From assembly GCA_010909165.1 (NCBI GenBank), contig MU008173.1, positions 124,001 to 188,000 of the forward strand: a stretch of DNA of 64,000 bases, in the 5' to 3' direction. Under the pieces are notes generated by a model. It worked only from the letters and a program-made list of their open reading frames with translations, was not told the origin of the DNA and made no database searches. The position numbers were made by a program, and so were the translations under genes. The DNA comes from Anthoceros angustus (lineage: Eukaryota > Plantae > Anthocerotophyta). This document shows positions 39,472-62,645 of the stretch, one piece after another (the first letter of the stretch is position 1; each line of letters starts with the position of its first letter).

Positions 39472-41336
39472 ATGGCGAAGGGGAGCGAGGTGAGAGTGGT
39501 GGTGGGGATCGATTTCGGCACAACATACTCTGGCTTCGCATTTGCGCACAAGGACGAGCCTGACAAGATCTGCGCATTCTACGAGTGGCCGGGGCAGGAG
39601 GGCAAATCATATTGCAAGACGCAGACCGGGCTGTTCTACGTGAAGAAGGGCACGGCTTGAGCAGCAAGCCAGTGTACGAGGTGACACACTGGGATGGCCG
39701 GCGCAGGCCCGACAGCTCAAAGAGGTCCCGGCCGCTGGATCGGAAGCTGGGGTTCACCTCACCAGGTTCAAGCTGCATCTGGCGCCGCAGAAGGCTCGGG
39801 ATGCCGCTCTTTCCAGGATGCTGTCAGGGCTGGAAATGGGATGGACAGGAGGTAAGGAAGCACGGCATGGCCCAGGCAGAAGAGGCGGACACGAAGACGG
39901 ATGGGAAAGATGTCGGCGTCAAGCTTCCCGAGGGCTTGCCAGTGGTGAGAGCGACGGCCGACTTCATCAAGGAGATCTCCACCTTCGCTCTCGAGCATGT
40001 GAAGGAGACATGGGGCGGCCACATCACGGCCAGGGATGTGCAATGGTGCCTGACCGTCCCCGCCATCTGGGACGATTCCGCCAAGCAGATCATGCGCAAG
40101 TGCGCGGAGATGGCCGGGCTGGTGGCAGGCCCTAGCTGCCCGCCTCACCTGGTCCAGACCGCCAGCCCGCATCCCGTGCGGATCGTGTTGGAATCCGAGG
40201 CGGCATCAGCGTACTGCGCCAAGACCAGATCAAAGCAGCTGAACCTGAAGCGCGGAGACGAGTTCATGGTGGCGGACATCGGGGGAGGCACCACGGACAT
40301 CGTGGTCCACACCATGGCCAACGACGGCGAGACGGAGATGAAGTTGAAGGAAGCAGTGCAGAGCTCGGGTGATCTCTGCGGGGGTGCGCATGTGGACGCC
40401 AACTTCTTCCACATGCTGCGGGCCAGGATCGGCTGCTTCGACGAAGTGGTGAGCCAGAACCCTGCCGCCATGACCGCGCTGCAGAGGCGCTGGTCCGACA
40501 TGAAAACCTCCTTCGATGGCTCTGAGGACTGGGGTCCTCAGAGCCTGGACGTCCCAAAGGCCATGAAGAAGGCGTGGAAATCCTACAACAGGAAATTTGG
40601 CGGGAGCGAGGACGTGGACTTGAACTACGCCGAGATCGAGCTCACAGTGTCGGACATGAAGCAGATCTTCGACCCTGTGGTGGACAGGATCATAGAGCTC
40701 ATTCGGGAGGCCATCACACCGCGCTTGAAGCAGCTGCTGCTGGTAGGCGGTTTCTCTGCCTCTCCTTACCTGGTGGACAGAGTGAAGGCAGCACTCGCGG
40801 GCAGGCTGGGAGACAAGATCGTGATGCCGCCAGATCCCGGTAGCGCCGTGTGCCAAGGAGCTGTCCTCTTCGGTTTTTCCCCGACCTGGTCGTCTCCAGA
40901 GTGGCCCGGAAAACCTACGGCCTTGAGGTGATGTGCCTTCGATTCGAAGCTCGATCCTCCCAGCTACCAGACTTGGAATCATAACGGTTGGCGATGCAAG
41001 AACAGGTTCGGCGTCTTCGTGCGCAGGGGACAGCACGTCGGCGTGGATGAAAGCTTCTCGGTTTCCGCAAGCCCCGGTATGGCAGACCAGACCAGCATAC
41101 CATTGCGCATCTTCAGCACAGACGCCGTGGAGGTGCGCTACACCACCGATCTCGGCGTGGTTCTGGAAGGCGAGTTCGAAATGGACGTCTCACACGATCC
41201 TGGCAAGATCGGTGTGAACCGTTGCATCACAACGTCAATGTTTTTCGGCAGATCGTGCATCCGCGTTCACTGTAAACGAGACAACTTTGGTGACACTGAG
41301 GAGACGGTCGAAATGGCCTCCACCCTGGAATTGTGA
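39472..41336 (+). pseudogene. HSPA12-like copy 7, full length with frameshifts
   Basis: MAKGSEVRVVVGIDFGTTYSG...EMASTLEL*; the lesions inspected are -1 events in G/C runs. Confidence 0.85.
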
Positions 41337-42179: not shown

Positions 42180-44047
42180 ATGGCGAAGGGAGCGAGGTGA
42201 GAGTGGTGGTGGGGATCGATTTCGGCACAACATACTCTGGCTTCGCATTTGCGCACAAGGACGAGCCTGACAAGATCTGCGCATTCTACGAGTGGCCGGG
42301 GCAGGAGGGCAAATCATATTGCAAGACGCAGACCGGGCTGTTCTACGTGAAGAAGGGCACGGCTTGAGCAGCAAGCCAGTGTACGAGGTGACACACTGGG
42401 ATGGCCGGCGCAGGCCCGACAGCTCAAAGAGGTCCCGGCCGCTGGATCGGAAGCTGGGGTTCACCTCACCAGGTTCAAGCTGCATCTGGCGCCGCAGAAG
42501 GCTCGGGATGCCGCTCTTTCCAGGATGCTGTCAGGGCTGGAAATGGGATGGACAGGAGGTAAGGGCACGGCATGGCCCAGGCAGAAGAGGCGGACACGAA
42601 GACGGATGGGCAAGATGTCGGCGTCAAGCTTCCTGAGGGCTTGCCAGTGGTGAGAGCGACGGCCGACTTCATCAAGGAGATCTCCACCTTCGCTCTCGAG
42701 CATTTGAAGGAGACATGGGGCGGCCACATCACGGCCAGGGATGTGCGATGGTGCCTGACCGTCCCCGCCATCTGGGACGATTCCGCTGGCAGATCATGCG
42801 CAAGTGCGCGGAGATGGCCGGGCTGGTGGCAGGCCCTAGCTGCCCGCCTCACCTGGTCCAGACCGCCAGCCCGCATCCCGTGCGGATCGTGTTGAGTCGG
42901 AGGCGGCATCAGCGTACTGCGCCAAGACCAGATCAAAGCAGCTGAACCTGAAGCGTGGAGACGAGTTCATGGTGGCGGACATCGGGGAGGAACCACGGAC
43001 ATTGTGGTCCACATCATGGCCAACAATGGCGAGAAGGAGCTGAAGCTGAAGGAAGCGGTGCAGAGCTCGGGTGATCTCTGCGGGGGCGCGCATGTGGACG
43101 CCAACTTCTTCCACTTGCTGCGGGCCAGGATCGGCTGCTTCGACGAAGTGGTGAGCCAGAACCCTGCTGCCATGACCTCGCTGCACAGGCGCTGGTCCGA
43201 CATGAAAACCTCCTTCGATGGCTCTGAGGACTGGGGTACTCAGAGCCTGGACGTCCCAAAGGCCATGAAGAAGGCGTGGAAATCCTACAACAGGAAATTT
43301 GGCGGAAGCGAGGACGTGGACCTGAACTACGCTGAGATCGAGCTCACAGTGTCGGATATGAAGCAAATCTTCGACCCCGTGGTGGACAGGATCATAGAGC
43401 TCATTCGGGAGGCCATAACCCCGCGCCTGAAGCAGCTGCTGCTGGTAGGCGGTTTCTCCGCCTCTCCTTACCTGCGGGACAGAGTGAAGGCAGCATTGGC
43501 AGGCAGGCTAGGAGACAAAGCGATCGTGATGCCGCCAGATCCCGGTAGCGCCGTGTGCCAAGGAGCTGTCCTCTTCGGTTTTTCCCCCGACCTGGTCACC
43601 TCCAGAGTGTCCCGCAAAACCTACGGCCTGGAGGTGATGCGTGCCTTCGATGACGAACTGGATCCTTCCAGCCATCGGGCATGGGGTGATTCCTTGGGTT
43701 GGCGATGCATGCACAGGTTCAGCATCTTCGTGCGCAAGGGACAGCACGTCGGCGTGGATGAAAGCTTCTCGGTTTCCGGAAGCCCCAGTTTGGCAGACCA
43801 GACCAGCATACCATTGCGCATCTTCAGCACAGACGCCGTGGAGGTGCGCTACACCACCGATCCCGGTGTGGTTCTGGAAGGCGAGTTCGAAATGGACGTC
43901 TCACACGATCCTGGCAAGCTCGGTGTGAAGCGTCGCATCACAACGTCAATGTTTTTCGGCAGATCGTGCATCCGCGTTCACTCTAAACGAGACAACTTTG
44001 GTGACACTGAGGAGACGGTCGAAATGGCCTCCACCCTGGAATTGTGA
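42180..44047 (+). pseudogene. HSPA12-like copy 8, full length with frameshifts
   Basis: Duplicate of copy 7; ORF 43004-44047 is uninterrupted. Confidence 0.85.
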
Positions 44048-44477
44048 CTCATCATCAGGCCTTGCCTTTCTTCCCGCGCTCATCCGCTATCATTTCACGA
44101 ACGCCACCACCGGTTTCCATTTTAGATGTCCAGCTCTGTCATGAAATCGTCACGACCCTCCTGTCATGTCACATCCAAAGCTTCTGATTCGAGTGCAACT
44201 GGACGATCCGATGGAAATTGAGAAATGCTTCCAAGCCCTAGATGAAGCGGGTGACCTGGGAAAGCCGGGTGAGTTTCCTTCCAGTTATGCACATATCAGA
44301 GTGAGAAGAAGAAAGAAGAAATTCTTTTTTCTGGACACTGTTTGTGTTTGTACACTGTTGATTCCTGCCCTGTACTCACATGGAGAGAGCAAGTGTACTG
44401 GCCGAGTGTGTCCTCCCGACAGTCTTCAGTCTCTGAGAAAACGTCAGACAGTCCAGGTTGGTGTGCTGGGGGCAGCG

Positions 44478-46367
44478 ATGGAGCCGACGGTGGTTGTCGG
44501 GGTCGATTTTGGCACCACGTTCTCGGGCTTCGCTTACGCGCACAGGCAGAACGCTGAGAAGAAGTACTCCTTCTACGAATGGCCGGGCCAGGACGGGAAG
44601 CCTTACTGTAAGACCCAGACCAGTCTGTACTACGAGAAGCATGAGGCCTCCGACGCACCGGGGAGCCTGCCGCGGTTCGAGCTCACGCATTGGGGATGGC
44701 CGGCTCAGGCTCAGCACCTCAAGAGCGCGCAGTCGGATGGAGGTCCCAAGGGCGTCTACATCAGCCGCTTCAAGCTCCTTCTGGCGCGTGGCACGCTGGA
44801 TGATGCTGCCTCAGAGCCCCAGGCTGCTGCTGCTGACGAAGTTGCTCAGTCGTTTGCCCAGCTCGAACTCGTCGCCAGCAGGAGCGAGGCAGGAGGATCG
44901 GAAGTGGAGGAAGGCAAGCAGCAAGCGATCGTGAAATCGCTCTTTCATCCTCCGGACGAAGGACTGAGTGTCATGAGAACCACTACCGATTTTCTGAGCC
45001 GATTGTCCGGCTTCGTGGTGGATCATCTGCAGAAGAGGCTCGGCTCGCGCCTGAGCTCGCGAGACGTGCAATGGTGCCTCACGGTGCCCGCCATCTGGGA
45101 GGACTCGGCCAAGCAGGCGATGCGGAGGTGCGCTCAGATGGCGGGAATGGTGATAGGCCCGCATTGCCCCGCGCATCTGGCCAGGATGGCGAGCCCGCAT
45201 GCGCTGCAGATCGTGCTGGAGTCCGAGGCAGCTTCTCTTTACTGCGCGAGCAACTCTGCTCAGTGGAATCTGCAAGAAGGAGACCAGTTCTTGGTGGCAG
45301 ACATCGGGGGAGGGACCACGGACATCGTGGTGCACACCATAGCCAGCGGCCCCGGGGACTCCCAGCTCAAGCTCAAGGAGACGACGGAGAGCTCCGGTGA
45401 CCTCTGCGGTGGCACCAATGTGGACATTAACTTCCTCAGCGCCCTTTGGGGACAGATCGGGTGCCTACACGAGATGGTGCGCACATCTCCGGCCACCATC
45501 GCCAAGCTGCTGAGAAGATGGTCGGACATCAAGGCCACTTACGACGGATCTGCCATGACCTGGGGCCCGGAGTACCTGGAAATCCCCAAGATTCTGGCTC
45601 AAGCATGGCGTTCTCACGACCAGCAGCACGGCAAGACGGCGGACGACTACGACGACATCCAGATCACAAGTGCCGACATGATGCAGATCTTCGACCCCGT
45701 GGTGGACAGAATCATCCAGCTGATCCAAGCTCGTGTGAGTCAGACTCCAGAGATCAAGCTTCTGCTCCTGGTCGGCGGCTTCTCCGCATCGCCTTACCTC
45801 AGGCAGAGAGTGAAGGCCGCATTCCAGACGCAACTAGGGGGCGCAATCGTGATCCCACCCGACCCCGGTAGCGCTGTCTGCCAGGGCGCTGTCCTGTTCG
45901 GCCTTTCCCCTGCCGCTGTCACCTCTAGGGTTTCCCGCAAAACCTACGGGATCGAGCAGGTGCAGCCGTTCGACCCGGCGATCGATCCCGACGGCTACCG
46001 GAGAGTAACGGACCGTGGAGAGTGGTGCGCTCATCGCTTCAGCGCCTATGTCCGGAAGGGCCAACAGGTTGCCGTGGATGATCGAGTGAAGCGCGTCAGC
46101 CAGCCCGTCCACCATGGCCAGCAGGAGATGAAGTTTCGCATTTTCAGCTCGGATTCCGCGGAGGTGCGCCACATCACTGAGCCCGGGGTGAAATTGGAGA
46201 GCGAATTCGCGCTGGACATCTCGGACGATCCCGGCAACCTGGATCTGGATCGGGAGGTGGAGGTGTCCATGTTCTTCGGGTTGTCTTGCATCCGCGTGGT
46301 TGCTCGTCGCCTCAATTTCGGACACACAAATGAAGTGACGGAAATGCAAAGCACTGTAGACTTCTAG
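44478..46367 (+). CDS. HSPA12-like atypical Hsp70, copy 9, intact (~629 aa)
   Basis: MEPTVVVGVDFGTTFSG, RFKLLL, WCLTVPAIW, LESEAAS, DIGGGTTDI, LVGGFSASPYL, SRKTYG. An upstream exon at ~44166-44268 (GTGAGT donor) is possible. Confidence 0.92.
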   Translation: MEPTVVVGVDFGTTFSGFAYAHRQNAEKKYSFYEWPGQDGKPYCKTQTSLYYEKHEASDAPGSLPRFELTHWGWPAQAQHLKSAQSDGGPKGVYISRFKLLLARGTLDDAASEPQAAAADEVAQSFAQLELVASRSEAGGSEVEEGKQQAIVKSLFHPPDEGLSVMRTTTDFLSRLSGFVVDHLQKRLGSRLSSRDVQWCLTVPAIWEDSAKQAMRRCAQMAGMVIGPHCPAHLARMASPHALQIVLESEAASLYCASNSAQWNLQEGDQFLVADIGGGTTDIVVHTIASGPGDSQLKLKETTESSGDLCGGTNVDINFLSALWGQIGCLHEMVRTSPATIAKLLRRWSDIKATYDGSAMTWGPEYLEIPKILAQAWRSHDQQHGKTADDYDDIQITSADMMQIFDPVVDRIIQLIQARVSQTPEIKLLLLVGGFSASPYLRQRVKAAFQTQLGGAIVIPPDPGSAVCQGAVLFGLSPAAVTSRVSRKTYGIEQVQPFDPAIDPDGYRRVTDRGEWCAHRFSAYVRKGQQVAVDDRVKRVSQPVHHGQQEMKFRIFSSDSAEVRHITEPGVKLESEFALDISDDPGNLDLDREVEVSMFFGLSCIRVVARRLNFGHTNEVTEMQSTVDF

Positions 46368-46887
46368 AACTGTAACTTTTCAAAGACTTTGCAGTTGCAT
46401 CAAAATGCTCCGCAAAAGGGTTTGATTCAGAAGAAGCCCCGTAGGGCTGAAGCAGCCGCGCACAGTGTGAGAGACGGGGGCGGGATTTCATTCAGGCCGC
46501 CCCGTAAATGGCCGGGTGACACCACGTCTTCGTACAGATTCGTCCATCGCACGCTTGACTGTGAAGTTCGAGTCCTGAGGAGTGAGGACCCTTCAAGGAG
46601 AAGGGAGGAGTAGCAACTGGCAAGGATGAAAATAGATAACCATCTCTGGTTGGGTGCCGCTTTATCGCTACATGCGGGCCCCTTTTGCTCCGGATCTGAA
46701 CAGAGACGGCGTCGCACTGTGATCAAGTGGTCGCTGCAGTCACTGCATTCTGCGGCTTTGACCTGACTTTGCTCCGATGCGGTTCAGCGAGTTCTTCGCA
46801 TCTGTGGAAGGTTGGCCACTTCGGGTGGCCAGGTCAGCGTAAGCCACGGTTTGTTGTTCCCGATTCTGAGGAATCATCAGGAGGAGG

Positions 46888-49755
46888 ATGGACATATTCA
46901 CGGTCATTTCCATCGCCGAAGTACTGGTGGGGATTGTATCCAAGGTGAAGGAATGCTACGAGAAGAGGAAGGAAAATCGCGAGGAGGCAAAGCAGATGAG
47001 CTCCTTCCTGGACAACTTGCTGACCAGTGTCCGCATGCTTGAAGATGAGAAATTTTCGCGCATCGACAACCCGGCAGCAGCTTCTGCTATTGGTACATCT
47101 AGGGCTTGCTTCAAATCCCAGCCCCCAACCCTAGATGTGTTGCAGGCTGGGATGTGGACGGATTTGTGAATGCAGGCCTGGGGTATTTTGTTGCTCATAT
47201 GATCCTGAAGCTTCTTGAACTGCTTGATTGCTCCTTGCAGCGGCATTGGGCCGTGACCTCCAAGAAGCTCAGGAGGGAGCTGCCAATCTCCTTTCACAAC
47301 TTAGCCGCCGGAAGTCGATGTGGAAGCCAAAACGCATACAGTTTGCTCTGCAGTCGCTGCAGCAACGCGTTAGAGATTCATTCCAGACGAATTTACTCAT
47401 GGCGTCACTTCATGTATGACTTTCTCTGCTCGCTTCTTTCTGCGCGCACCCTGAGCCAGAAGAGGTCAATTATTCTGTTACAGTACGCTCTAGGAATGTT
47501 GTGCCAGCTGGTGATAATTTCTGCTTGGAGTTTGCAGATGAGCGTGACCAGCGACCGGAAACTGCAAGCAGTTCTCGACGAAAAGAGTGAAAGGGAGAAG
47601 ACCGCTCTGATAGACAAAGTGGAGAAACTGGAGATGGAGAATCACATGTACCAGGAGCTGTTGCATTGGCTGCGGAGAGATCAGCCCGCTTGGCGATCAG
47701 CTGAAGTAAGATTTCGTGCTCAAGGCTGCACCTAGGATTCTCGTGAGTTTATGCACAAGTTCCAGATGTTGCACTGTCTTGTAACCTCATATACTAGTAC
47801 TGACTTTCTTTTGCTCTCTGTTGTCATCATGAACCTAGCCTGAGCCAGAGCACACCACTCCGAGGCACCCTGCTGATCATGATGTTGCAAGGCTAGATGA
47901 AGTCTCTTGTACGTTTAAAACGAATTCCTGCATCATGTTTCTCCTCAAACTTGTGTGCTGATCAAAAGGAGTGAATTCATTCATTGTGATGACACATTAT
48001 CCTTCTGTCGGAAGTGGCAGCGGGCAGGTCCAACCGAGCAAGAAGAACAACCAGTGACCCGATGCTAGCTTCCTTAGGAGAGATTCTTGGGGACTGGCAC
48101 ATGGGAGGGAACATTGCAGGATTTGGCAGCCTGGAGGAGCAATCCGAAGAGGCAGACCTGGATGATATAGAAGAGTACTCGGATGAGGAAGAGCAGCCGA
48201 GGCGTCTGAAAATGTCCAGTCTCAAGATCGTGCGGCTTTCCAACGCCTCCCTGACAGCGGAGTACCCCGAACAGGCCTGCTTCACACCCGGTGCCCTGGC
48301 TGTCCAAGCCAACCGGGCTTGTACCGAGCGTATCCCTTTCTATTACTTCGAGGTGGAGGTGATCAGGCAGGGCAGTGACATCGCCATGGGCTTCACACGA
48401 GTTTCCAGCTTCAAGAACAACAGGCTGCCAGGGTTGTATCCAGATTCCTACGGCTACCATGGCGATGGCGGGATTTTCATGGCATCAGGTCACTCGAGAG
48501 TTCTGGGCTTCGTGTCTGGGGACAGAGTTGGTGCAGGGATCCATTTCGGCATGCACCAAGTCTTCTTCACCAAGAACGGGGAGCTTGTGGCATCCAATCC
48601 CGTGGACACTGAGGGGGAGGGCCTCGTCCCCACAATCGGCCTTCGAAGACCGGGTGCCAAAGTGACTGTCAACCTGGGCCGCTCCAGATTCAAGCGAGAA
48701 CCCCTCCCCACACGCCTGGATCCCCGTGGGCTTGAGGGGAGCGCAGTCTCCATCTTGCCAGACTACTTGACTGTCAGGTACTGGCTCCATCTTCCTCTTT
48801 CGACAAGACGACTACTGTCCCACAAATTCTCACCTTCTCCATGTTTCTGTGAAGGCACGAAGGACTCAACTCCAACGGCATGGTCTCCGTGCAGGCAGAC
48901 AAACCTGCAGCATATCGGAGGCACTTCTTCTACTTCGAGATCCTGGTGGAGGACACTGGGACGAAAGGCCGAATTGTGGTCGGCTTCACGGGCTCCAGAA
49001 ACGGGGCGTCTGAGAAAATCTGGGAGACCAACGCTTGTGGATACCACGGCATCAGCGGCAAGATTTTCTCCAACAAAGAGGAGCTTCCGGGCGCCCGAGA
49101 GACCTTCACCGCAGACGACCATGTTGGGGCCGGAATACACTACCGCACCAACCAGCTCTTCTTCGTGAAGAACGGGCAACTGGTGCGAACGCTGCCCAAC
49201 CCGCTCTCAGGGCCCGTGTTCCCCACAATCGGGCTGCAGTCCAGCCAGGAGAGGGTGAAGGTCATCTTCGACCAGGCTGCATTCAGCGCAGAGAAGATTC
49301 CCCGGCGGCTGGACTTCCCGGCGCGCTTCGGCGGCACTCCTGTGGCGGTTCTGGCCAACAGACCCGCGCCATTCCGCGGGTCCGGCTACTACTTCGAGCT
49401 GTGCGTAACGGATTCCGTTTGCGCCATCGGGTTCGCAGATCGGGAGCGCTTCCGGGAAAACGAGCTGCCCGGGACGTACCAGCACTCTTGCGGCTACGAT
49501 GGCGCCACCGGGATGCTCTTCACCGGCTCCAAGCCAGGGCTGAAATTCGGTCCCACTGCAAAGCCAGGCGAAGTCCTGGGCGCTGGCTTGCTCTATGACT
49601 CCTACGAGCTCTACTTCACCAAGAACAGGAAGGTGTTCGGCTGGCATGCCTGTAATCTGCGATCCTCTTGCGCCCTTTACCCCACAGTCGGCATGCTCAC
49701 CGGTCGTCATGTCGAGGTCAACTTTCTTGCTCGCCTTCCCTTTCCGTCAACTTGA
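46888..49755 (+). CDS. Spliced gene: N-terminal four-helix bundle (MLKL-NTD/RPW8/Cbl-N-like) + coiled coil + acidic linker + 3 tandem SPRY domains
   Basis: Phase-consistent exons 46888-47092, 47241-47413, 47538-47705, ~48030-48777 and 48855-49755; the junction between 47705 and ~48030 is uncertain. Three YYFE(V/I/L)...G(Y)HG/GYDG...GAG...FFTKNG-type SPRY repeats. Confidence 0.8.
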
Positions 49756-50938
49756 GAATGGCTTCCAGTAATCAATGTGGTAACTGCCACTCCATCTCCC
49801 CAGTCCCTGTAGTCTTCCTTATTATTGTCACCCACACGCATTGAAGAGCCCCCAAAATTGAGCCTGTCAAGTAACTTCCACAATTTGCTGCCAGGCGAGA
49901 ACTTGGACATGGCAAGCATGAACCTTTAGGAACTCCCTGGTGAAGGACATGCAAGCTTTGATTGGCGCTGGGATGGGAACCTCGGGATGGGATAGGTTGG
50001 GGTGCTTATCCCAATAATGGAGCTTCAGAAATGAGGACCTCTGTAAAAATCTCTTCCACGGATTGCTCAGAACTGTTTCTTATCTACCAAGCGGGCTCTC
50101 AAGGGAGCTCCATCCCACTTCTGAACCGCTTCATATAAAGATACCCCAGTTCGTCAGCAAACTTCAGATACCTTCAGGCCGCGCTTCTTGCAAGGCTGGC
50201 TTCGTGGCCCATCCGATTGCAAAAAACGGGGCGGAATATTATGGATTTCAGTAGCAAGGTTTGACATGGTCTCGTCCACGTCACCAAGGGATGGAGTGTG
50301 TTACAATCTGCCCACGTGGTGGCGCAAGTGGCTATCGTGCTTTGACGTTGGAAAGCAGAAGAGGAGATGGGCAGAGTTGAGGCTTCCGGCATCATCACTG
50401 TCTGCACCTGGGCTTAGAGCTCGCTTCCCAGCTCTCTCTACTTCACTTACAAGTAAGAGGTCGTGGTGGCGAGTGATCGTCCTTGTGCAGGAATTGCGCG
50501 TCCGGGATGATGACTTGATGCAGAGCGTGGCTGGAGCGGAGCATCTGGCTTGTTCCAGCGCCGGGTGTTCCAGTGGTGTTCAAGGAAACGACATGAGCAA
50601 GTGAGCAGGACTTCATGTTCAGCGCATAGGTCGAGTGTGGATGAGTTTCATCGATTGGGTGAGTTTTTCGTGTTCCTGCTTCTGGTTGTGGACGGCCACT
50701 AATCTGCACAAGCTGAAGAACCCTAGCTGCCATTCAATGTCAGATCTGGGACGGCCTTGTGTATTTGGCATCCCCGATGGCGAACCATGGTGGTCGCAAC
50801 ACCCATCCATCGCCGCACCCGTTTCATCCCACAAGTGTAGGTGCCCTCGTTAAATTTCTGGCCGGCATTCTTGTAAGCTGTTGTTCCTAGCTGCAGTGAG
50901 CTCGTGAGTGTGGCATGTTCAGAGTCAAGTGCTGAAGT

Positions 50939-52570
50939 TTGTGTTGTGTCCAACAGCCTCAGAGGATGCCGCAGGGTGTAGCCGGTATGCAGCAGTCACG
51001 AGCGGCTAACTCGTATTTCGTGACTGAATCAAAAGCACTGGAGGACCTGAGGGGTTGTGTGCAGATCACCATAGCTCAACTGAACAGCGGGGTCGAGGGA
51101 ATGGACAAATTTTCAAAAGATCTGGACGCACTCCTGCTCGCAGCTCGTGACTTGTTGCAGGTGAAGTCTAACCACGTTGAGGATGAGCCTGATCCGAAGC
51201 AAACCAGAGTTCCAAGAGGTCTTTTCTATGGACAGGGAATAGGGGGTTCGAATTCTGGTGTCAGTGATGATCAGGGCCACATACAAGAGAAGGGAGCTCC
51301 AAAAAGTGTAGAAGCTTGGGGGCATGAATCCAGTCAGCAAGTGTTCATGATCGGCCAGGAAGCGAAGCGCTTGGATATGAGGGATGACAGGTTCCTAGGA
51401 GGACAGCTATCTCATCACGATCTGCAGGAAGGTGGTCAGCTTCTTGAACAAAACTCGCAGATGGGTGTTGACCCTTTGGCGGTACTGGAGGATAGGAAGG
51501 AAAAGCTAGTAGCATCCCTCACACAGATAAAACAGGGGTGGGATTGCCTTCGTGACGTTCACAACACCGTGTACGGGCGGTTTACGGTTGCAGATGATCA
51601 ACTCCAACGTGTCGTTTCAGCGAACAAGCATATTGTTCAGGGGAGGAATTACGCACACGAAATCGACCGAATTGAAGACTCTTGGCGGCGAAAGCATGAA
51701 ACTGTCAAAAAGGAACTGGCCGATCTTAAGGCCAACATGGATGAGCAGGTCCAGAGTCTGAAAGCGAAATTACGGCAGGCTGAGCAGGAAAATCGCAAAG
51801 CACGAGGTGGCTCGCATACGGACAACGGAGCCCTCCCTCCCGGGTTGGATCAGGCTGCGACGGCTGTGAAGAACAGACTGGTGAATTTTGCCAAAACCGT
51901 GAGCGACCATGGGTTTGCTAACCGCCTCGAGCTTCCCCGTGATGAGCGGCATAGCTCTCAAGTCATTGATTCCATGGCATTCCCTACTAAGGAACGCCGT
52001 ATGAAGTACCGCGCAGCGTATGTGATCTCTATTCTGATGTTCAGGGGCTTTGAGATCGACGGCTTCGACTCCACGAAAGGTTACTTTCTTCCCAGCTTGG
52101 ATCCTGACGATAGCGCCTCCGCTTCCTTCGAGGAGTTTCAGACCCTGAAACATCAGTCGTCGGATGCCGCCTTCCTACAGCAAGTGGAGGAAATAGTGAT
52201 ATCCAACGCAGCGGCCGATGGGGACCGATTCCAACAGTTTGTCTGGCAAAAATTTCGTGACGTGGTCCCTGACAAGCTGTTGGAGGAGGCGTGTGGAATC
52301 CCTGATATCGTGAAGAAGTTTGTACATCTTGCTATTGCAGTGTGGCTATTGCAGAGGTTGGCTCTTTCATTTCACCCCAACGCTAAGATCTTCAGAGTGC
52401 CGTGTGGCGCGGAATTCGACGATCGGTATATGGTTAAGATTGCGGATAACGAGCCTGACACGGCCCCGCCCACAGTTGGGTTCATGGTTGTTCCAGGATT
52501 TCGGCTGGGGAAGATCATCGTCAAGAGTGAGGTGTACCCTCAACGTGGTGACTGCAGCGAAGAAGAGTAG
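50939..52570 (+). CDS. GIL1/IRKI-like coiled-coil protein (main exon; true start may lie in an upstream exon)
   Basis: Central coiled coil, then FRGFEIDGF...AVWLLQRLALSFHPNAKIFRV...VGFMVVPGFRLGKIIVKSEVY, resembling the GIL1/IRKI C-terminal domain. Confidence 0.82.
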   Translation: MCCVQQPQRMPQGVAGMQQSRAANSYFVTESKALEDLRGCVQITIAQLNSGVEGMDKFSKDLDALLLAARDLLQVKSNHVEDEPDPKQTRVPRGLFYGQGIGGSNSGVSDDQGHIQEKGAPKSVEAWGHESSQQVFMIGQEAKRLDMRDDRFLGGQLSHHDLQEGGQLLEQNSQMGVDPLAVLEDRKEKLVASLTQIKQGWDCLRDVHNTVYGRFTVADDQLQRVVSANKHIVQGRNYAHEIDRIEDSWRRKHETVKKELADLKANMDEQVQSLKAKLRQAEQENRKARGGSHTDNGALPPGLDQAATAVKNRLVNFAKTVSDHGFANRLELPRDERHSSQVIDSMAFPTKERRMKYRAAYVISILMFRGFEIDGFDSTKGYFLPSLDPDDSASASFEEFQTLKHQSSDAAFLQQVEEIVISNAAADGDRFQQFVWQKFRDVVPDKLLEEACGIPDIVKKFVHLAIAVWLLQRLALSFHPNAKIFRVPCGAEFDDRYMVKIADNEPDTAPPTVGFMVVPGFRLGKIIVKSEVYPQRGDCSEEE

Positions 52571-53150: not shown

Positions 53151-54181
53151 CTCCAAGGCCAGTGAATGTCTCTGCGAATGTCTTCTTTCTGTGGATGAGG
53201 AAGCCGCTCCCATTAAAACTACTAGGGTCCTGCTAGGATGGAAGTGTGGTTTTCGATACGGACCTCAGTCTGCGCATTTTGATTGTGAGGCTGTATTGGG
53301 CACCTCCGCCGTGATCCGACGGACAGATAACCAGCCAGTTATCCTCTCCACTTGCAAAAACTCCGTCCCCGTTGCGGAAGCCATGCTTGCTAGCATGGGA
53401 ATCGGAATGGCCTATGGGACAGTGCGTTGGAAACTCCGCGTGGCTCCGAGACAGCTCCCATCGTCACAGAAGTTTTAGAGCACGGATGGCGTCACAGGAA
53501 ACGCAAGCCTCAAAAACAGGCCTGGACACGCACAGTCATTCTTGGGCTAATTAGCGATGCCACAATGCCATCTCAACTTTCATCCGTTTCCCGAGTGTCG
53601 CCAACTTTTTGCCGTTGCCGATCTCCATGTTGCTTCTCCAGGATTTGATGCTCAAGGATTGCGCAACACGCTAGTGTCTAATATTATTAGGGAGCGCCCC
53701 TTCCCAGACCCCACGCCACAGGCCGAGAAATGTGTTCTTCTCGACAGGGTTCTGCATAGCTGGTAAGGATCCAGAGTGTTGAATCAACCCCAAAGAATGC
53801 ATAGCAATGAGCTATCTGACCCTTCATTCAGCACCAATCTTGAGACAAGCTCTCCAGCCAAGGATGCTCATCTTCCTAGCAGAAGCTGCATAACAGGTGC
53901 GCCGACAGGTCACTCTGCGGCGCAAGAGTAGCTTCCAAGGCAGCACTTTCCCCATTCTGGGGGAGGTGGGGTCCGAACCAAAGACTCGGTCTTAAGATAA
54001 CAGTCGAACACACCTGTTTGTGGGCAGGCACGCACGCAGGGAAAATCATAAAGAAACGCAGCTTGCAACGACAGTTAGAGTGAGACGAGACCTGGCCCCT
54101 CCTCCTCCTCTCAAACATGGGAACTGGGCAGCTTTCCCTTTCCCTGCTGTGAGGAGCCGCAGTTTCCAGTGTCGTCCATCC

Positions 54182-56211
54182 ATGGCGGCCGGCTGGAAGC
54201 AGAAGTTGAGCAAACGGGCGGGGGCGTCGGTGTCGTCGACGAGCAGCGAGACCGGGGAGGCGAAAATCGTGGTGGGTTTGGATTTCGGGACCACATTCTC
54301 GGGCTTCGCGTTCGCGCACAGGGACGAGCCGGACAAGGTGTTCTGCCACTACGAGTGGCCGGGGCAGGAGAAGAGCTACTGCAAGACGCAGACGAGCCTG
54401 TACTACGTGCGGGAGGGGCCCGGGCCCGAGGCCAAGTACAGGGCCACGCACTGGGGCTGGGGGGCGCAGCAGGCGCACTTGAAGCAGCTCAAGGGTCAGG
54501 GCGGGCGAGCCGGGCTCTGGGAGCAGAGCGCCAGCCTCTTCCTCTTCAAATTCAAGCTCAATCTGGCGCCGGAGGGGTGGAGGACGGGGCGGCAAGGGCA
54601 GGACGGGGCGGACGCGGCGCAGCTGGATGCGCTGGCCAGGCTGCCGGCGGGGATCACCACCGTAGACAGCATCACCGAATACCTGGGGAAGCTCTCGGGC
54701 TTCGTGATCGAGCATCTCAAGGACAAGTACGGGCCGCACATCACGTCCCGGGAAGTGCAGTGGTGTCTCACGGTGCCCGCGATATGGGAGGATTCGGCCA
54801 AGCAGACGATGCGCAGATGCGCCCAGATGGCGGGCATGGCCACCGGGCCTTTCTGCCCGGCGCAGTGGGCGGGGAGGGCCAGCCCATTCCCGCTGCTGAC
54901 CGTGCTGGAGTCGGAGGCGGCGTCCGTGTACTGCGCGCGCAGATCCAACCAGTTCGCTCTCGGGAAGGGGGACCAGTTCCTGGTGGCGGACGTGGGGGGC
55001 GGGACCACCGACATCGTGGTGCACACCAAGCAGAACGACAGCTCGTCCGATCTGCGGCTGCGGGAGGTGTCGCAGAGCTCGGGGGACCTCTGCGGGGGCA
55101 CGCATGTGGACCAGGGCTTTCTGGGATTTCTGGGCCGCAGGATTCCGTGCTTCCTGGATGAGGTGCACGGTGCCCGCCACTCTCACCAAGGTGCTGAAAC
55201 GGTGGCAGGAGTTGAGGTGTCGCAGAGCTCGGGGACCTCTGCGGGGGCACGCATGTGGACCAGGGCTTTCTGGGATTTCTGGGCCGCAGGATTCCGTGCT
55301 TCCTGGATGAGGTGCGCACGGTGCCCGCCACTCTCACCAAGGTGCTGAAACGGTGGCAGGAGTTGAAGGTGTCGTTCGATGGCGATGACCAGTGGGGGCC
55401 GGAGGACTTGGAGATCCCTCCCAATCTGTCCAGGGCCTGGAAGGTGTACGATGCCAGGATGGGATACTGCTCTGCAAACTACGACGAGATAGAGATCACG
55501 GCGTGCGATATGCGGGCCATCTTCGATCCTGTGGTGGATGGGATCATTGCGTTGATCGGGCAGCGGCTGACTCCGCAGGTGAAGATGATGCTGCTGGTGG
55601 GTGGCTTCTCTTCCTCGCCGTATCTCAAGCTCAGAGTGAAGGGTGCCTTTGCCAGGCAGCTGGGTGATCGGATAGTGACCCCGCCGGATCCCGGCAGCGC
55701 TGTGTGCCAAGGGGCCGTCTTCTTCGGCTTCGCGCCGGAGGTGGTCACCTCCAGGGTTAGCTGCAAAACGTACGGGATCCAGCAGATGCGCAGGTTCCGG
55801 CCTGGGGATCCCCCTGCTTATAAGACCATGTCGCAGGGGACGGCCTACTGCATCAACACCTTCACGCCCTATGTGCGGAAAGGGCAGGAAGTCCCCATCC
55901 AGCACTGCGTCAAGTACAGAGGAGGCCCTTCTGTGTGTGGCCTCAAGACCTTGAACATCAACATTTATAGCTCGGATAAGCAGGAGGTGCGCTACACCAC
56001 CGACGCGGGAGTGAAGCTGGAGGCTACTTTCAGCATGGACATATCTCACGATCCTAAGAACCTGGATCTGAACAGGGAAGTGGAGCTGTCCATGTACTTT
56101 GGATTGTCGTGTATAGAGGTTAAGGCGAGGCGCCTCAATTTTGGGGATCGGAATGAGGTGGTTAGCATGCACGATGTCATCGGCTTGACACTCGAGACAC
56201 CCGTCGTTTGA
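54182..56211 (+). pseudogene. HSPA12-like copy 10 (inverted twin of copy 2) with ~150-bp internal duplication and a frameshift
   Basis: ORFs 54020-55348 and 55255-56211; repeat starts at 55064 and 55214. Confidence 0.88.
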
Positions 56212-56681: not shown

Positions 56682-58588
56682 TTAGGAGGCAGCAATTTGA
56701 GAGTACACTTCACTTCTTATGACGACTTTCCCTACACGGAAGCCTGGAACAACCATGAAGGCGACTTTGGGAAGGAAAGGATGTTCATCTTCATCCACAA
56801 TGTTAGCCATGTAGGAAGGATTGAAGTCTGCTCCACTATCCACTCGGAAGATCCTTGCACTGGGCAGAAAGGAGAGAGCCAACCTTTGCAACAGCCACAA
56901 TGCGGTAGCAAGAGCCACGAACCTTCTGTAGTAGGGGTGGTGCGTTTGTTGACATGTCGGTACAAGCTGCCTAGGAGTAATGCTGAAAAACTTGCTACGA
57001 GCAAATTGTACCATCTTACTGCTGGAGTTGGCCGGGTTCAGGTCCACCACCGTTTTGTTGGACTTGAGCTGCTGGAATTCCTCGAAGAAGGCTTCGCGAG
57101 GCCTGTCCAGATCCAAAGGCCCGGGCCCGCAAAACCCATCAATCTCGAACCCTTGGAACATGGCAGTCGATATGACATAAGCCGCAAGGTACTTATGGTG
57201 GGTAGACCTTGCAAGTCTCGTCCTGCTGATCACTCCGGAATCTCCATAGGGCAACGCCGCTTTCTCCATCACCGTGCCATACTCCTTGGCAAACAGTAGC
57301 AGCTTGTCTTTCACGGTCCTCACATGATCATCCAGCAGCACAGGTGTTGCTTCACCGTCCGTGTACGCTCCGGACCTCGACTTTCTTGCGTTATCCTGTT
57401 CCAGCAACCTCGTCAGCTTCTGCACCTGCTGCTGCCCAGCCCTAACCTCCTCCTTGAGCTTTAAAATTTCGTTTTCCCCGTTCCTGCTCCTCAACGCCTC
57501 CTGGTAGGTTCCCTCCTGCACATCCCGCGTCGGCGATGCGGTCCTCGTCGGAGACCCGTACTGATCATGGCGAGAGATATCATGCACAACCTGCCCTCTC
57601 CGATCGAAGGAGTCCCTCCTCATACCATCAGGCGTTTGCAATCGGTGATCGAAAGACTGCACTCGGCCAGTCCGACTTTGGAGCTCTTGCCTCAACTCCG
57701 TCACACTGGCGTTCGAGTGACGATTCTGCTGTGCCTGCTTCACCTCCGGTTGAGCCAGGAGTACCTGCAGCTGCATGTGATGCTCCATAACCTCCGAAAC
57801 AAACGCTGCAGTACGGTTGCTCCAGTGTTTCAGATGAGAAAGCTCATCATCTGTACCTTCCCTCTGCCTGGTGTGGTGAGCGCTGTCATCCAAGGAGCCT
57901 GTACGCCGATGGTGGTTTTGCTGAAGCTGGGCTACTCGGCTCCGAGGATGAGCATACCCCTGGGCAATCGGTCCACTGAAAGGATGAGAGTACATGCTGT
58001 TCTTCACATCCTGCCACCCTCCTCCCAACCCCTCCCGTTCTGCCGTCGGACCCCGCACAATCATGCCATCAGCTGTCCTGGCCGGTAGCTCCACCAGACC
58101 TCTACATTTGAACTCGTGATCCTGCCTAGCCTGGGAGGCCAACTCTGCCATTTTTTTGCATCCAGCTTCAAGATTGTCCAGCGCAGATAGATACAGATTA
58201 GATACCTGGCCGAGCCTCGGGGCTATACCCTCGTACACTTTTACATGTATCCGGGCCGGCGTCTGTGGGGCCGACTGCTGCACCAAAGCTGGTAAGGGTT
58301 GGGTCGCAATGAACTGAGCTGAGGTAGAGGAAGTGTAAGGCTCGCTTGATGACGAGGATGTCAGAAACGACTACTTGTTACAAAACAGAAAGCACACTGG
58401 TCAGTCAGCATTCCAGAAACTTTTCTTCTTCCCTAGCTCAGCATAGCATTGCCGGAGCTGATCAGATCAGCCTTCCAACTCCAGGACAGTAGTACCTCGT
58501 TTTCTCTGATGCCATAGCCAGACTCCAGATGTCCCTGGTTCTTGGGCTTCTTCTCCTTTCCGAACAGCGCTGTTTTCAACTTCCTCAT
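56682..58588 (-). CDS. GIL1/IRKI-like coiled-coil protein, two exons (58496-58588 and 56682-58370), ~593 aa
   Basis: Exon 1 MRKLKTALFGKEKKPK...ENE|GT joins in frame at an AG acceptor. C-terminus FQGFEIDGF...LWLLQRLALSFLPSARIFRV...VVPGFRVGKVVIRSEVY. Confidence 0.82.
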
Positions 58589-59105
58589 AGCTCCTCTGTC
58601 CGCGGTTTCCTGGAACCGGAAGCGCAGAACCACCCTCTCCAACACCTGCAAGCGAAATTCGGACCCCTTCCTGACTCCACAACAACCTGTTACATCAAAT
58701 TCGGGCCGAGGCTGCAACCCTACATGACTTTAGCAGGCAGACATGCCGGAAACAAGAAACAGCTGGAGGATTTCTCATTCGGGAGAAGGGGAAGAGGAAA
58801 TTTACGAGGTGGTTGAGCAAGCCGTGAAGTGAGGTTGGGGATTGGAGAGCCAGTGCTGGAGTCTCCCGCAAGAATCGCGTGCGGCGGGTGGAGGCAATTG
58901 GTGCGAGCAGGAGCGCATTGCCTTATCCTGGGCGCTAGTGCACAGCCACCTGCTGTAGCACTTTGACATGGTCGTGAATTGTTTAAACAAAAAGCCGCCC
59001 AGCCCGCATCCCGCACCGCGGTGGCACAACGCAATTCGGACAGCACAAAACTGCTGTCCCTTCGCGGAAAGGGTCAGAGGTGGGTTGCCTCCCATCGCCG
59101 CTGCC

Positions 59106-61097: not shown

Positions 61098-61456
61098 CGG
61101 TGGTGGACCTGAACACGGCCAACTCCAGCAGTAAGATGGTACAATTCGCTCGTAGCAAGTTTTTCAGCATTACTCCTGGGCAGCTTGTACCGACATGTCA
61201 ACAAACTCACCACCCCTACTACAGAAGGTTCGTGGCTCTTGCTACCACATTGTAGCTGTTGCAAAGGTTGGCTTTCTGCCCAGTGCAAGGATCTTCCGAG
61301 TGGATAGTGGAGCAGACTTCAATCCTTCCTACATGGCTAACATGGTGGATGAAGAGGAACATCCTTTCCTTCCCTAAGTCACCTTCATGGTTGTTCCAGG
61401 CTTCCCTGTAGGGAAAGTCGTCAAAGTGAAGTGTACTCTCAAATTTGTGTGTCCTA
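61098..61456 (+). pseudogene. GIL1/IRKI-like C-terminal fragment
   Basis: VVDLNTANSSSKMVQFARSKF...FLPSARIFRVDSGADFNPSYM, nearly the same as the end of the 56682 gene. Confidence 0.85.
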
Positions 61457-61789
61457 AAGTTGCTCATCTCCTGGAGATGGTAGTGTGGAGCAGTCCACTT
61501 AGATCTATCTCGTGTCAGGAATGAGAAACCTTGGGGCTTGGAGATTTTGGGAGCCTGTAACGTTCCTTGTGCTGCTGAATGCTATGTAAGTATGGATTGC
61601 ACACACTTCTAGGAGGTGTCCTAGAAAGAAGCTGCTCCTATACACGCATGTCTAACTTCTGGAATGCCCTTGCAAACTTAGTGCAACCTGCTGTGGAACG
61701 CTGTGAGGGCGAGAAACGTGCGTGCATGCCTCACTATCTGTGAGCGCCACCACCTGTGTTGAATGAACGTGAGTTCATGTTCTCGGATG

Positions 61790-62645
61790 TGCTTGATGAC
61801 GGACACCGTCAACTCCATCCCGTGGTAGTCGACGTCGTCTCTCCCTTTCGTTCCCTTGTTGTAGGATTCCCAGGCCCTCCTCAGATGCGTCGGGATGTGC
61901 AGGTAGTGAACTTCCCTGTGGTCGGCGCCATCGAAGGAGTATTTTATGTCGGACCAGCAGCAGTGCCGCCGCCGCTCGCTCGCTCGCTCGCTCGGAGCGT
62001 CACTGCTTGCAGCTTCTCGTTGTGGCTCAGCTTCATTTGCACACCGAACAAGTTAGCTTTCCCAGTGTGTACAACAGATCTCATAACAAGATGTCTTCTG
62101 GCTCAGGGTGTGTGCAGAAACTAGCTAGCGGAAAGGTCATACATGAAAATTCGCCACGTTAAAAGTCGCATTAAATGAATCTCTAACGTGTTTGTCCAGT
62201 CACTGTAGGTTTGGCTATATGCTTTGTTGCTTCCATGTCGCGATCGCATTCCAGCGGCCAAGTCGTTCAAGGATCTTGTCAGCCCTCGTCTGCGCTTCTT
62301 GGAGGTCACACCTCAATGTTGCTGCAAGGGGGAATCAAACAGTTCAAGCTTCAGGATCATGTCAGCAACAAAATACTCCATAACCACGGTAGGCTCGGTG
62401 GTGAAACGCACCTCCAAGGCGTCTGTGCTAAAGCTGAGAAATCCTAAGGTGGACTGGTCCGCACAACCGGGGCTTTCGGAAACCGACTTGCGCGTGAAGA
62501 CTGTGAACCTATCCCTGCATCGCCAACCGAGGGAAATCCATGTCCGGTAGCTCGGAGGATCGGACTCCGAATTTGAATCGAAGCCAAACATGTGCCCATC
62601 ATTTCGGTTTTGCGGGACACCTGAGACGTCTAGAGATGACCAGGT
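61790..62645 (-). pseudogene. HSPA12-like copy 12 fragments (~61790-61950 and ~62390-62645) flanking the 4HB remnant
   Basis: SDIKYSFDG..HIP..LRRAWESYNK..DVDY..MELTVS and WRCRDRFTVFTRK..FSTDALEVRFTT. Confidence 0.7.
61995..62375 (-). pseudogene. Decayed paralog of the four-helix-bundle gene (intron 1 end, exon 2, start of exon 3)
   Basis: Reverse complement matches ~47185-47575: TLRCDLQEAQ..WKQQSI*..VRDSF..FH|GT, then KLQAV. Confidence 0.8.

Follow-up and report, generated by a model that had tools for sequence, protein, structure and literature searches.

The locus on the plus strand of the 64-kb window (the whole stretch of 64,000 nucleotides of Anthoceros angustus DNA that was analysed) raises the question of what a plant protein might do that joins a helical N-terminal domain to three SPRY domains, and whether such a protein represents a new architecture or the altered member of an existing family. 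The original prediction had taken the former position, describing an N-terminal bundle resembling those of MLKL, RPW8 and Cbl fused to three SPRY domains in a combination unknown in plants.

The locus is an intact, transcribed gene of six exons with a 759-aa product. A single spliced contig of 3110 nt (record 2 of run X1) joins the exons with 0 mismatches in blocks at 46437-47092, 47241-47413, 47538-47705, 47839-47908, 48015-48777 and 48855-50134, and this one transcript both places the bundle and SPRY exons in a single gene and reproduces the N-terminal peptide originally proposed. The transcribed region covers 46437..50134 and comprises a 5' UTR of 451 nt from the contig start (46437..46887), within which the list of open reading frames places an upstream frame of 46 codons (46626-46766), a coding sequence at 46888-49755 whose frame is open for 759 codons, and a 3' UTR reaching to the contig end (49756..50134). 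The sequence around the start codon (46888) includes A at -3 and G at +4, and all five introns (148, 124, 133, 106 and 77 nt) begin with GT and end with AG. The short exon at 47839-47908 is deduced from both flanking joints of the contig. An alternative start for exon 5 at 48021, following an in-frame AG at 48019-48020, was rejected; the contig uses 48015.

From its N-terminus the protein consists of a helical domain (aa 1-127) and then, after a long helix and an acidic linker, three SPRY domains. Exon 1 (46888..47092, aa 1-68, ending in a phase-1 donor according to the contig and the alignment to relatives) encodes the very hydrophobic first helix of the bundle, the second helix and a loop, while exon 2 (47241..47413, aa 69-126, fixed by the contig joints) encodes the third and fourth helices and includes the family-conserved W96 and V112-x3-F116-Q117. 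The fourth helix continues as a long helix in exon 3 (47538..47705, aa 127-182, from the contig), which is composed of helix formers throughout, is probably a coiled coil and corresponds, in shortened form, to a segment, the 'brace', that is longer in relatives. Exon 4 (47839..47908, aa 183-205, from the contig joints) encodes a Pro/His-rich linker at the position that the brace end and the U-box occupy in relatives. The contig and Pfam together define exon 5 (48015..48777, aa 206-459), in which further linker, including the expected acidic tract (48134-48196), leads into the first SPRY domain; exon 6 (48855..49755, aa 460-759 and the stop codon) contains the second and third.

All three SPRY domains, at 48341-48682 (E 4.7e-13), 48928-49275 (E 5.7e-13) and 49387-49725 (E 9.1e-12), belong to Pfam PF00622, scoring 49.7, 49.4 and 45.6 bits against a gathering score of 26.3 bits, and the repeats originally called are thereby confirmed. 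An exon-by-exon Pfam scan at E<=1 found no NB-ARC, kinase, RING, B-box, PRY, PYD or U-box, in agreement with the predicted absence of NB-ARC, kinase and U-box. Outside the family described below, the nearest SPRY domains (36-45% identity) are those of RanBPM/GID1-like proteins with CLTH; a word-index search with exon 6 returned only RanBPM-like proteins, its length window having excluded long relatives. Lacking PRY, RING, B-box and PYD, the domains are not of the B30.2 or PRY-SPRY type, and the analogy that had been drawn with the B30.2 domains of TRIM proteins and pyrin is a loose one.

The relatives of the head domain bear on the origin of this gene. A local phmmer and HMM search with aa 1-140 retrieved homologues from a moss (Ceratodon), a fern (Adiantum), liverworts (Marchantia and Riccia) and one transcript contig, among them Adiantum P0014 (E 8e-16) and the transcript-contig protein P0011 (E 5e-14). 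Against a family HMM of the head, Ceratodon P0160 scored E 1.5e-38 and the Marchantia and Riccia proteins P0166-P0171 E 1e-17 to 1e-28; the head is 30% identical to that of P0160 (E 4e-16), and the window protein is identical at 21 of 30 family-conserved head positions. Searching with P0014 residues 1-140 retrieved Adiantum paralogues only, Pfam scans of the separate head exons yielded no more than noise, and phmmer with exons 1 and 2 and a search of PDB sequences with a family profile found nothing relevant. The moss and fern proteins (Ceratodon purpureus KAG0580291.1, which is P0160, and Adiantum capillus-veneris KAI5057293.1 with its tandem paralogues, P0014, P0164 and others) and P0011 are all annotated as 'hypothetical'. 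The head and three collinear SPRY domains are common to them and the window protein, the former at 26-33% identity (E 1e-16) and the latter at 32-35% (E down to 2e-69), but between the two they have a brace of greater length followed by a U-box and TPR-like helices, where the window protein has a low-complexity or acidic linker of ~115 aa and an extra intron; the moss relative also has a C-terminal ubiquitin domain that the window protein does not. The liverwort proteins (Marchantia polymorpha MPTK1_2g10460, M. paleacea Mapa_003256 and Riccia, P0166-P0171) carry the same head followed by U-box and TPR and no SPRY, whereas the window protein has head and SPRY and neither U-box nor TPR. Pfam identifies a U-box with SPRY, TPR or ubiquitin in the relatives, U-box and TPR also occur upstream in the contig of P0009, and every relative found has brace, U-box and TPR behind its head.

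The combination of this head with three SPRY domains is thus not new to plants, but in moss and fern it always comes with a U-box and a TPR-like segment in between, and the window gene can therefore be read as a U-box-less derivative of the ligase family and not as an independent pairing of executor and sensor. Residues 1-162 of the window protein align to P0160 1-153 (E 4e-16) and residues 277-756 to P0160 447-950 (E 2e-69), while P0160 154-446 has no counterpart in the gene or anywhere in the 64-kb window. No U-box or TPR was found in the whole window by tblastn with four relatives, the introns are too short to conceal a U-box, and on aa 126-300 a family U-box HMM gave -0.6 bits, less than the best shuffled sequences (5.4). 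A resemblance of the linker to a U-box, 'DP...G.....W', was rejected by the same HMM. The gene structure is also shared: introns 1 and 2 occupy the same alignment columns, in the same phases (1 and 0), as introns of the Ceratodon gene, while intron 3 (phase 0) and the intron between the first and second SPRY domains (phase 2) agree in phase with Ceratodon introns, lie within 5-9 columns of them and are probably common to the moss gene. On the strength of these alignments we regard the window gene as a homologue of a non-seed-plant family composed of head, brace, U-box, TPR-like helices and three SPRY domains, from which a middle section of ~290 aa appears to have gone with no U-box remnant. 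That this was a loss is indicated by the collinearity of what remains, by the shared introns and by the presence of a U-box in every relative found. The head-domain tree does not resolve relationships, and alone it would not place the window copy within the U-box-bearing group; its branch for the window head is 2.17 long against ~0.5 in relatives, a fast evolution that fits a changed role and, equally, relaxation.

In considering the fold of the head, we modelled the homologue P0160 and transferred the result to the window peptide at 30% identity. The AF2 model of P0160 1-150 contains four helices (pLDDT 83.8, pTM 0.75), the fourth of which continues beyond residue 149 in the models of relatives; a model of P0014 1-225 built from 5 sequences (pLDDT 50.7) was too poor for use. 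The P0160 head matches an Rx_N-type CC structure: among 48,161 PDB chains the potato Rx CC (4m70, its complex with RanGAP2-WPP) ranked 1, at Z 13.4 and rmsd 1.9 A with 106 of 107 residues aligned, and a second comparison reached Z 13.7 with 111 of 112 aligned, the rmsd lying at 1.9-2.2 A throughout, although with this aligner helical models may reach a best Z near 14 without kinship, and IncA gave Z 12.9. Matches to MLKL (Z 7.4-8.9, rmsd 2.9-3.3, 96-114 aa), to HET-s (Z 8.1), and to MLKL, HeLo and NRG1 CC-R taken together (Z 7.4-9.2) lie at the level generic for helical bundles, as do those to Cbl (6xar, Z 8.5; 8qng, Z 9.6 at rmsd 10.5); EF-hand and SH2 domains are absent by Pfam, which sets the protein apart from the Cbl TKB group. 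The four-helix bundle originally called by eye therefore stands on the homologue model, its likeness to MLKL and Cbl-N being, in these superpositions, that of any helical bundle. Of the K-E-N-x-E-E pattern one Asn is invariant in the family; as an MLKL signature the pattern would be no more than a candidate.

Other searches bear on the class of the bundle. A language-model search with two relatives of 35% mutual identity returned as neighbours only MLKL_N, MCAfunc, DUF7792, RPW8 or PUB10_N clusters at scores of 0.90-0.92 with 170-187 shared features, RPW8 clusters appearing only at 0.88-0.89; these neighbours favour the clan of MLKL_N and HeLo-like bundles. Foldseek found no PDB match at E<=0.001, and a shape search of the Atlas was uninformative. 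Among Pfam profiles, MLKL_N (PF22215, cut-off 27 bits) had no match on the window exons and its gathering score was not reached; in two Adiantum paralogues only were there collinear matches below threshold, of 13.7 bits (E 0.046) and 12.7 bits (E 0.095), and the best sub-threshold E, also from Adiantum, was 0.012. Neither window exons nor relatives matched RPW8 (PF05659), nor Rx_N or NB-ARC at E<=10, and MCAfunc and PUB10_N had no Pfam match. Judged on the model and the language-model neighbours, the head family would belong structurally to the four-helix bundles of the plant CC, MLKL_N, MCAfunc and RPW8 class. The first helix (aa 3-20) is as hydrophobic as predicted, with a Kyte-Doolittle mean of 2.07 over 18 aa, and exceeds that of any relative, which an adaptor of the kind proposed below does not require.

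In proposing a role for the window protein, our essential contention is that without a U-box it is most likely a non-catalytic adaptor or regulator, and we put at somewhat better than even the chance that it is a ligase-dead member derived from the bundle, U-box, TPR and SPRY ligase family. Such a protein would be unable to recruit an E2 on its own. Its SPRY domains would bind the clients of the ligase family, its head and long helix may pair or compete with putative U-box-bearing paralogues or their partners, and substrates would thereby be shielded, sequestered or handed over, as they are by animal RING-less TRIM-like proteins.

A more dramatic function has to be weighed against this adaptor. 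The SPRY domains might bind a ligand, for instance a protein of pathogen or damage origin, and free the bundle, whose first helix would drive oligomerisation and insert into the membrane to cause ion flux or cell death, with no call for NB-ARC, kinase or U-box. In its favour, an NLR CC domain is the structure that the homologue's head matches best, there are further matches to NRG1 CC-R, HET-s HeLo and MLKL, the language-model neighbours include MLKL_N, RPW8 and MCAfunc clusters, and after loss of the U-box the head is the sole candidate effector part. Its helix 1 is the most hydrophobic in the family, and in non-flowering plants the CC domains that are competent for cell death are defined by suitably positioned hydrophobic residues at their N-terminus (PMC11218826). 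Against this, all homologues carry the head within a ligase, where killing is not needed, the Rx CC is itself mainly a partner-binding module, the MLKL, HeLo and CC-R matches are those of any bundle, and the Pfam thresholds of MLKL_N, RPW8 and Rx_N are passed by none of these proteins. We consider this function unlikely, and slightly less likely still the evolutionary proposition that goes with it, of a ligase turned NLR-independent sensor and executor in a bryophyte-grade plant, with a SPRY arm that releases a membrane-inserting bundle; if true, this would be a plant counterpart to pyrin- or TRIM-type sensing coupled with a resistosome-type effector head. The same hydrophobic segment invites a simpler view, that the first 20 residues are a signal anchor or transmembrane helix of a membrane-anchored SPRY protein and no part of a bundle. 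Its Kyte-Doolittle mean is in the transmembrane range, but we find this view very improbable, given that the segment aligns gap-free to helix 1 of the relatives, that helix 1 of the confident homologue model is packed within the bundle, with pLDDT 73-93 across the first 30 residues, and that the other domains of the protein are of cytosolic type.

There is also the prospect that the gene has no selected function, being a damaged duplicate without its former catalytic core that drifts while still transcribed and open in frame. The deletion of U-box and TPR and the very long head branch would both follow, and copies do die in this region: 12 kb away, on the minus strand at 61980..62322, a local tblastn located a pseudogene fragment of this head domain, a decayed partial copy at 41-43% identity that spans exon 2 and the beginning of exon 3 and is interrupted by two in-frame stops. 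In a related species, moreover, about half of the sampled differences are non-synonymous. Yet 759 codons remain open across six exons with every splice site intact, the head retains two thirds of its conserved positions, each of the three SPRY domains scores above the Pfam cut-off, and the related species retains a SPRY region that is ~92% identical, expressed and spliced at the same intron, with an indel of 6 nt that preserves the frame. Synonymous and non-synonymous changes in about equal number would imply, in this small sample, a dN/dS of roughly 0.3 and not 1. We therefore regard drift as improbable, if less so than a membrane anchor, and retain the ligase-dead adaptor as the preferred reading.

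Bundles of the CC, MLKL_N, RPW8 and MCAfunc kinds head plant immune receptors and a large family of PUB ligases, and to our knowledge the job of the head within ligases is poorly understood. The present locus amounts to a natural separation-of-function allele, in which head and substrate-binding arm are kept and the ligase core is absent, and its comparison with U-box relatives could tell an oligomerisation or targeting device from an effector head. As a variant of an unstudied family the protein is of interest, but it is not a wholly new kind of protein; the analysis at the same time documents that family of SPRY-tailed U-box ligases, which extends over mosses, ferns and liverworts. Our literature search found no account of a plant protein combining the bundle with U-box, TPR and SPRY or with SPRY directly. 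In one survey, SPRY is named as an additional domain of some U-box proteins of Chlamydomonas (PMC4378952).

The structural features of this family have analogues in three known systems. Classical PUB ligases with a UND, MCAfunc or PUB10_N head, such as AtPUB13 (head, U-box and ARM), resemble it in placing a streptophyte four-helix-type head before the U-box and a variable substrate-binding tail behind, and MCAfunc with U-box and ARM is the ancestral combination in streptophytes (PMC8049495); the family described here differs in having a SPRY tail instead of ARM, and the window copy in being without the U-box. Plant NLR CC domains (Rx CC 4M70, MLA13 and the CC-R of NRG1.1) and the HeLo bundles of MLKL and HET-s are four-helix up-down bundles of the same size, but there is no sequence similarity to them at family thresholds, and the window protein is without the NB-ARC, pseudokinase or prion-forming partner of the NLR, MLKL and HET-s systems. 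Animal TRIM and pyrin sensors, finally, share a layout in which an N-terminal part for effector function or oligomerisation is followed by a coiled coil and by C-terminal SPRY recognition, and RING-less TRIM-like proteins offer the parallel of a family member without its catalytic domain. The ligase domain of the plant relatives is a U-box and not a RING, B-box and PRY are absent, the three SPRY domains are RanBPM/GID1-like, and the origin is independent; in its layout, the SPRY-tailed U-box family is a plant analogue of the animal TRIM ligases.

The gene at 46888-49755 (+) is expressed as a single transcript. A 3110-nt contig from a public run (X1) spans 46437-50134 (+) with no mismatches and leaves out five GT..AG-bounded segments of 148, 124, 133, 106 and 77 nt; since these five canonical introns are absent, the contig derives from spliced RNA. 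The six exons it defines on the forward strand (46437-47092, 47241-47413, 47538-47705, 47839-47908, 48015-48777 and 48855-50134), joined by script from the window sequence, contain an uninterrupted reading frame of 759 codons that starts with an ATG at 46888, flanked by A at -3 and G at +4, and ends with a TGA at 49753-49755, in agreement with the coordinates and spliced N-terminal peptide of the original prediction. The single spliced contig also places the helical and SPRY exons on one mRNA, which removes the possibility that they are separate genes. Within the 451-nt 5' UTR (46437-46887) lies a 46-codon upstream ORF (46626-46766) that could exert translational control. Two in-frame AG acceptors 6 nt apart (48013-48021) would let the exon begin at either 48015 or 48021; the sole contig available uses 48015, and an alternative isoform starting at 48021, shorter by two residues, is possible.

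Pfam places three SPRY domains above threshold (48341-48682, 48928-49275 and 49387-49725, +) and detects no PRY, RING, B-box, NB-ARC, kinase or U-box in the gene, reproducing the three SPRY repeats, without NB-ARC, kinase or U-box, that had been read by eye. The sequence also has an acidic tract at 48134-48196 (+). Outside the family described below, the closest SPRY domains belong to green-algal proteins of RanBPM/GID1-like type, at 36-45% identity. Exons 1-3 (aa 1-182), scanned exon by exon, match no Pfam family, and a PDB sequence search with the helical exons returned no match.

When exon 6 was compared with 1.84 billion representative proteins in a full HMMER search, multi-SPRY proteins ranked top and none was more than 50% identical. 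Joined residues 1-210, searched by local phmmer against 155 fetched proteins, gave exactly two matches, both over residues 4-135: Adiantum capillus-veneris KAI5057293.1 (P0014; E 8e-16) and P0011, from a transcript contig of SRR6920663 (E 5e-14). A family HMM identifies the same N-terminal helical domain, or head (aa 1-127 here), in Ceratodon purpureus KAG0580291.1 (P0160; E 1.5e-38) and, by profile search, in Marchantia and Riccia proteins (1e-17 to 1e-28). According to Pfam, the Adiantum proteins and P0011 combine the head with a U-box and two to three SPRY domains, P0160 has head, U-box, three SPRY domains and ubiquitin, and the liverwort proteins have head, U-box and TPR without SPRY; thus, every relative found has a U-box. 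The best exon-6 match, P0009, was rejected as a bare triple-SPRY protein because U-box/TPR coding sequence lies upstream in its contig. At least eight near-identical head-U-box-SPRY genes stand in tandem on one Adiantum chromosome (GOP47_0027308 to GOP47_0027316); such clusters are the typical pattern of fast-evolving recognition genes. Another multi-SPRY match, P0015 (1035 aa), has a HET (heterokaryon incompatibility) domain and a Mind-bomb SH3 repeat together with two SPRY domains, a further death-domain-plus-SPRY layout.

Comparison with the moss gene points to a loss of the U-box. Residues 1-162 align with P0160 1-153 (30% identity, 4e-16) and residues 277-756 with P0160 447-950 (35%, 2e-69), both collinear, but a counterpart of P0160 154-446 (brace, U-box and TPR-like helices) is absent from the gene and from the whole 64-kb window; no intron is long enough to conceal one, and aa 126-300 score -0.6 bits, less than shuffled controls, with a U-box HMM derived from nine relatives. 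When the Ceratodon exons are delimited exactly from the genomic locus, introns 1 and 2 agree between the two genes in alignment column and phase (1 and 0), and the Ceratodon intron 3 (phase 0) and SPRY1/SPRY2 intron (phase 2) each fall within 5-9 columns of a window intron of the same phase; intron 4 is additional in the window gene, at the place of the relatives' U-box. The simplest history would be an ancestral head-brace-U-box-TPR-SPRYx3 gene whose ligase core was lost from the window copy. This rests on collinearity, introns and distribution, not on the topology of the head-only tree, which is unresolved and in which the window branch is about four times longer than the moss and P0011 branches. 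The unusual architecture originally reported is real, and its interpretation stands in part: the relatives have a U-box, and the window copy is most simply derived by its loss.

A first model of the head, built for P0014 1-225 with 5 sequences, reached a pLDDT of just 50.7 and could not be used. Alignment A4, in which 11 sequences drawn from five lineages were joined by the window peptides of exon 1 and of exon 2, each in its own row, gave an AlphaFold2 model of P0160 1-150 with pLDDT 83.8, pTM 0.75 and helices at 3-30, 34-56, 66-91 and 98-149. The predicted four-helix bundle is thereby established for the family in this modelled homologue, and carried over to the window protein by homology; the suggested kinship with MLKL is not proved by Z ranking alone. 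Foldseek returned no match at E<=0.001, with TM of 0.56-0.81 by target for Rx CC chains. VIA-align ranked potato Rx CC (4m70) first of 48,161 representative chains (Z 13.4; rmsd 1.9 A over 106/107 residues), followed by the Sw-5b N-terminal domain (11.4), IncA (10.7), MLA13 CC (8.7), Cbl TKB (8.5), HET-s (8.1), NRG1.1 CC-R (8.0) and MLKL (7.4), and a second look gave Rx 13.7, IncA 12.9, NRG1.1 9.2 and MLKL 8.9; since, as VIA-align warns, the best Z of a helical model is often near 14 even where no kinship exists, this ranking alone proves no CC/MLKL homology. Protein-language-model neighbours lend independent support to CC/MLKL_N-class membership: two relatives, 35% identical to each other, scored 0.90-0.92 with 170-187 shared features, and the top named clusters were all streptophyte MLKL_N, MCAfunc, DUF7792, RPW8 or PUB10_N. 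Collinear Pfam MLKL_N matches, under threshold, occur in Adiantum alone. Of 30 head positions conserved across the family, the window protein shares 21, including Asn30, Phe40, Trp96, Val112 and Phe116-Gln117, which are invariant.

Beyond the architecture, expression, homology and U-box loss demonstrated here, the protein, being without a U-box, is presumably unable to bind E2, and its most likely role, held with modest confidence, is that of a non-catalytic adaptor or regulator. The SPRY arm would bind clients, and the head with its long helix would pair or compete with ligase paralogues or their partners. That it is instead an executor is unlikely, even though its head belongs to the CC/MLKL_N class and its helix 1 is strikingly hydrophobic, the most so in the family; in non-flowering plants, hydrophobic residues at the N-terminus are required for the cell death that CC-type bundles cause (PMC11218826). 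A drifting relic is less likely and quite improbable, and membrane anchoring highly improbable.

In organism B, a related species, contigs with about 92% identity span 48062-49767, splice the SPRY1/SPRY2 intron at the same place and carry an in-frame 6-nt insertion; 11 of the 23 listed exon 5 differences are synonymous, which on so few changes suggests moderate purifying selection. Upstream of 48062 the match ends and the contigs continue with over 255 nt of dissimilar sequence, and just one 51-nt piece of exon 3 matches at >=90%; the linker and head there may be either much more diverged or differently built.

Around the adaptor candidate stands an array of HSPA12-like (Hsp70-superfamily) genes (44166-46367, 54020-56211 and 58968-60911, +), with weaker traces near 40341-40736 and 43160-43438; Pfam HSP70 matches the first copy at E 3.6e-11 and the third marginally (E 4e-4, below cut-off). 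Interleaved with these lie two paralogues that share a GIL1/IRKI C-terminal domain (PF24994), at 50939-52570 (+) and 56682-58286 (-), with E of 3e-11 and 7e-12, and a further such fragment is present near 61219-61467. The arrangement suggests a repeatedly duplicated three-gene unit. A pseudogene fragment at 61980-62322 (-) is homologous, at 41-43% identity, to exon 2 and the beginning of exon 3 and contains two in-frame stops, with no exon 1 or SPRY counterpart detected near it. Since HSP70, an MCAfunc head and a kinase occur together in one moss protein (PMC8049495), the HSPA12-like neighbourhood may not be accidental.

The family holding this protein was itself previously unstudied, and our literature search found no paper on head-U-box-TPR-SPRY or head-SPRY proteins. 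MCAfunc-type heads are streptophyte-specific, with U-box and ARM as ancestral partners, as in AtPUB13 (PMC8049495), and a listing of additional domains in Chlamydomonas U-box proteins includes SPRY (PMC4378952). Set beside these systems, the window protein is a U-box-less, SPRY-tailed variant of the four-helix-headed plant U-box ligases.
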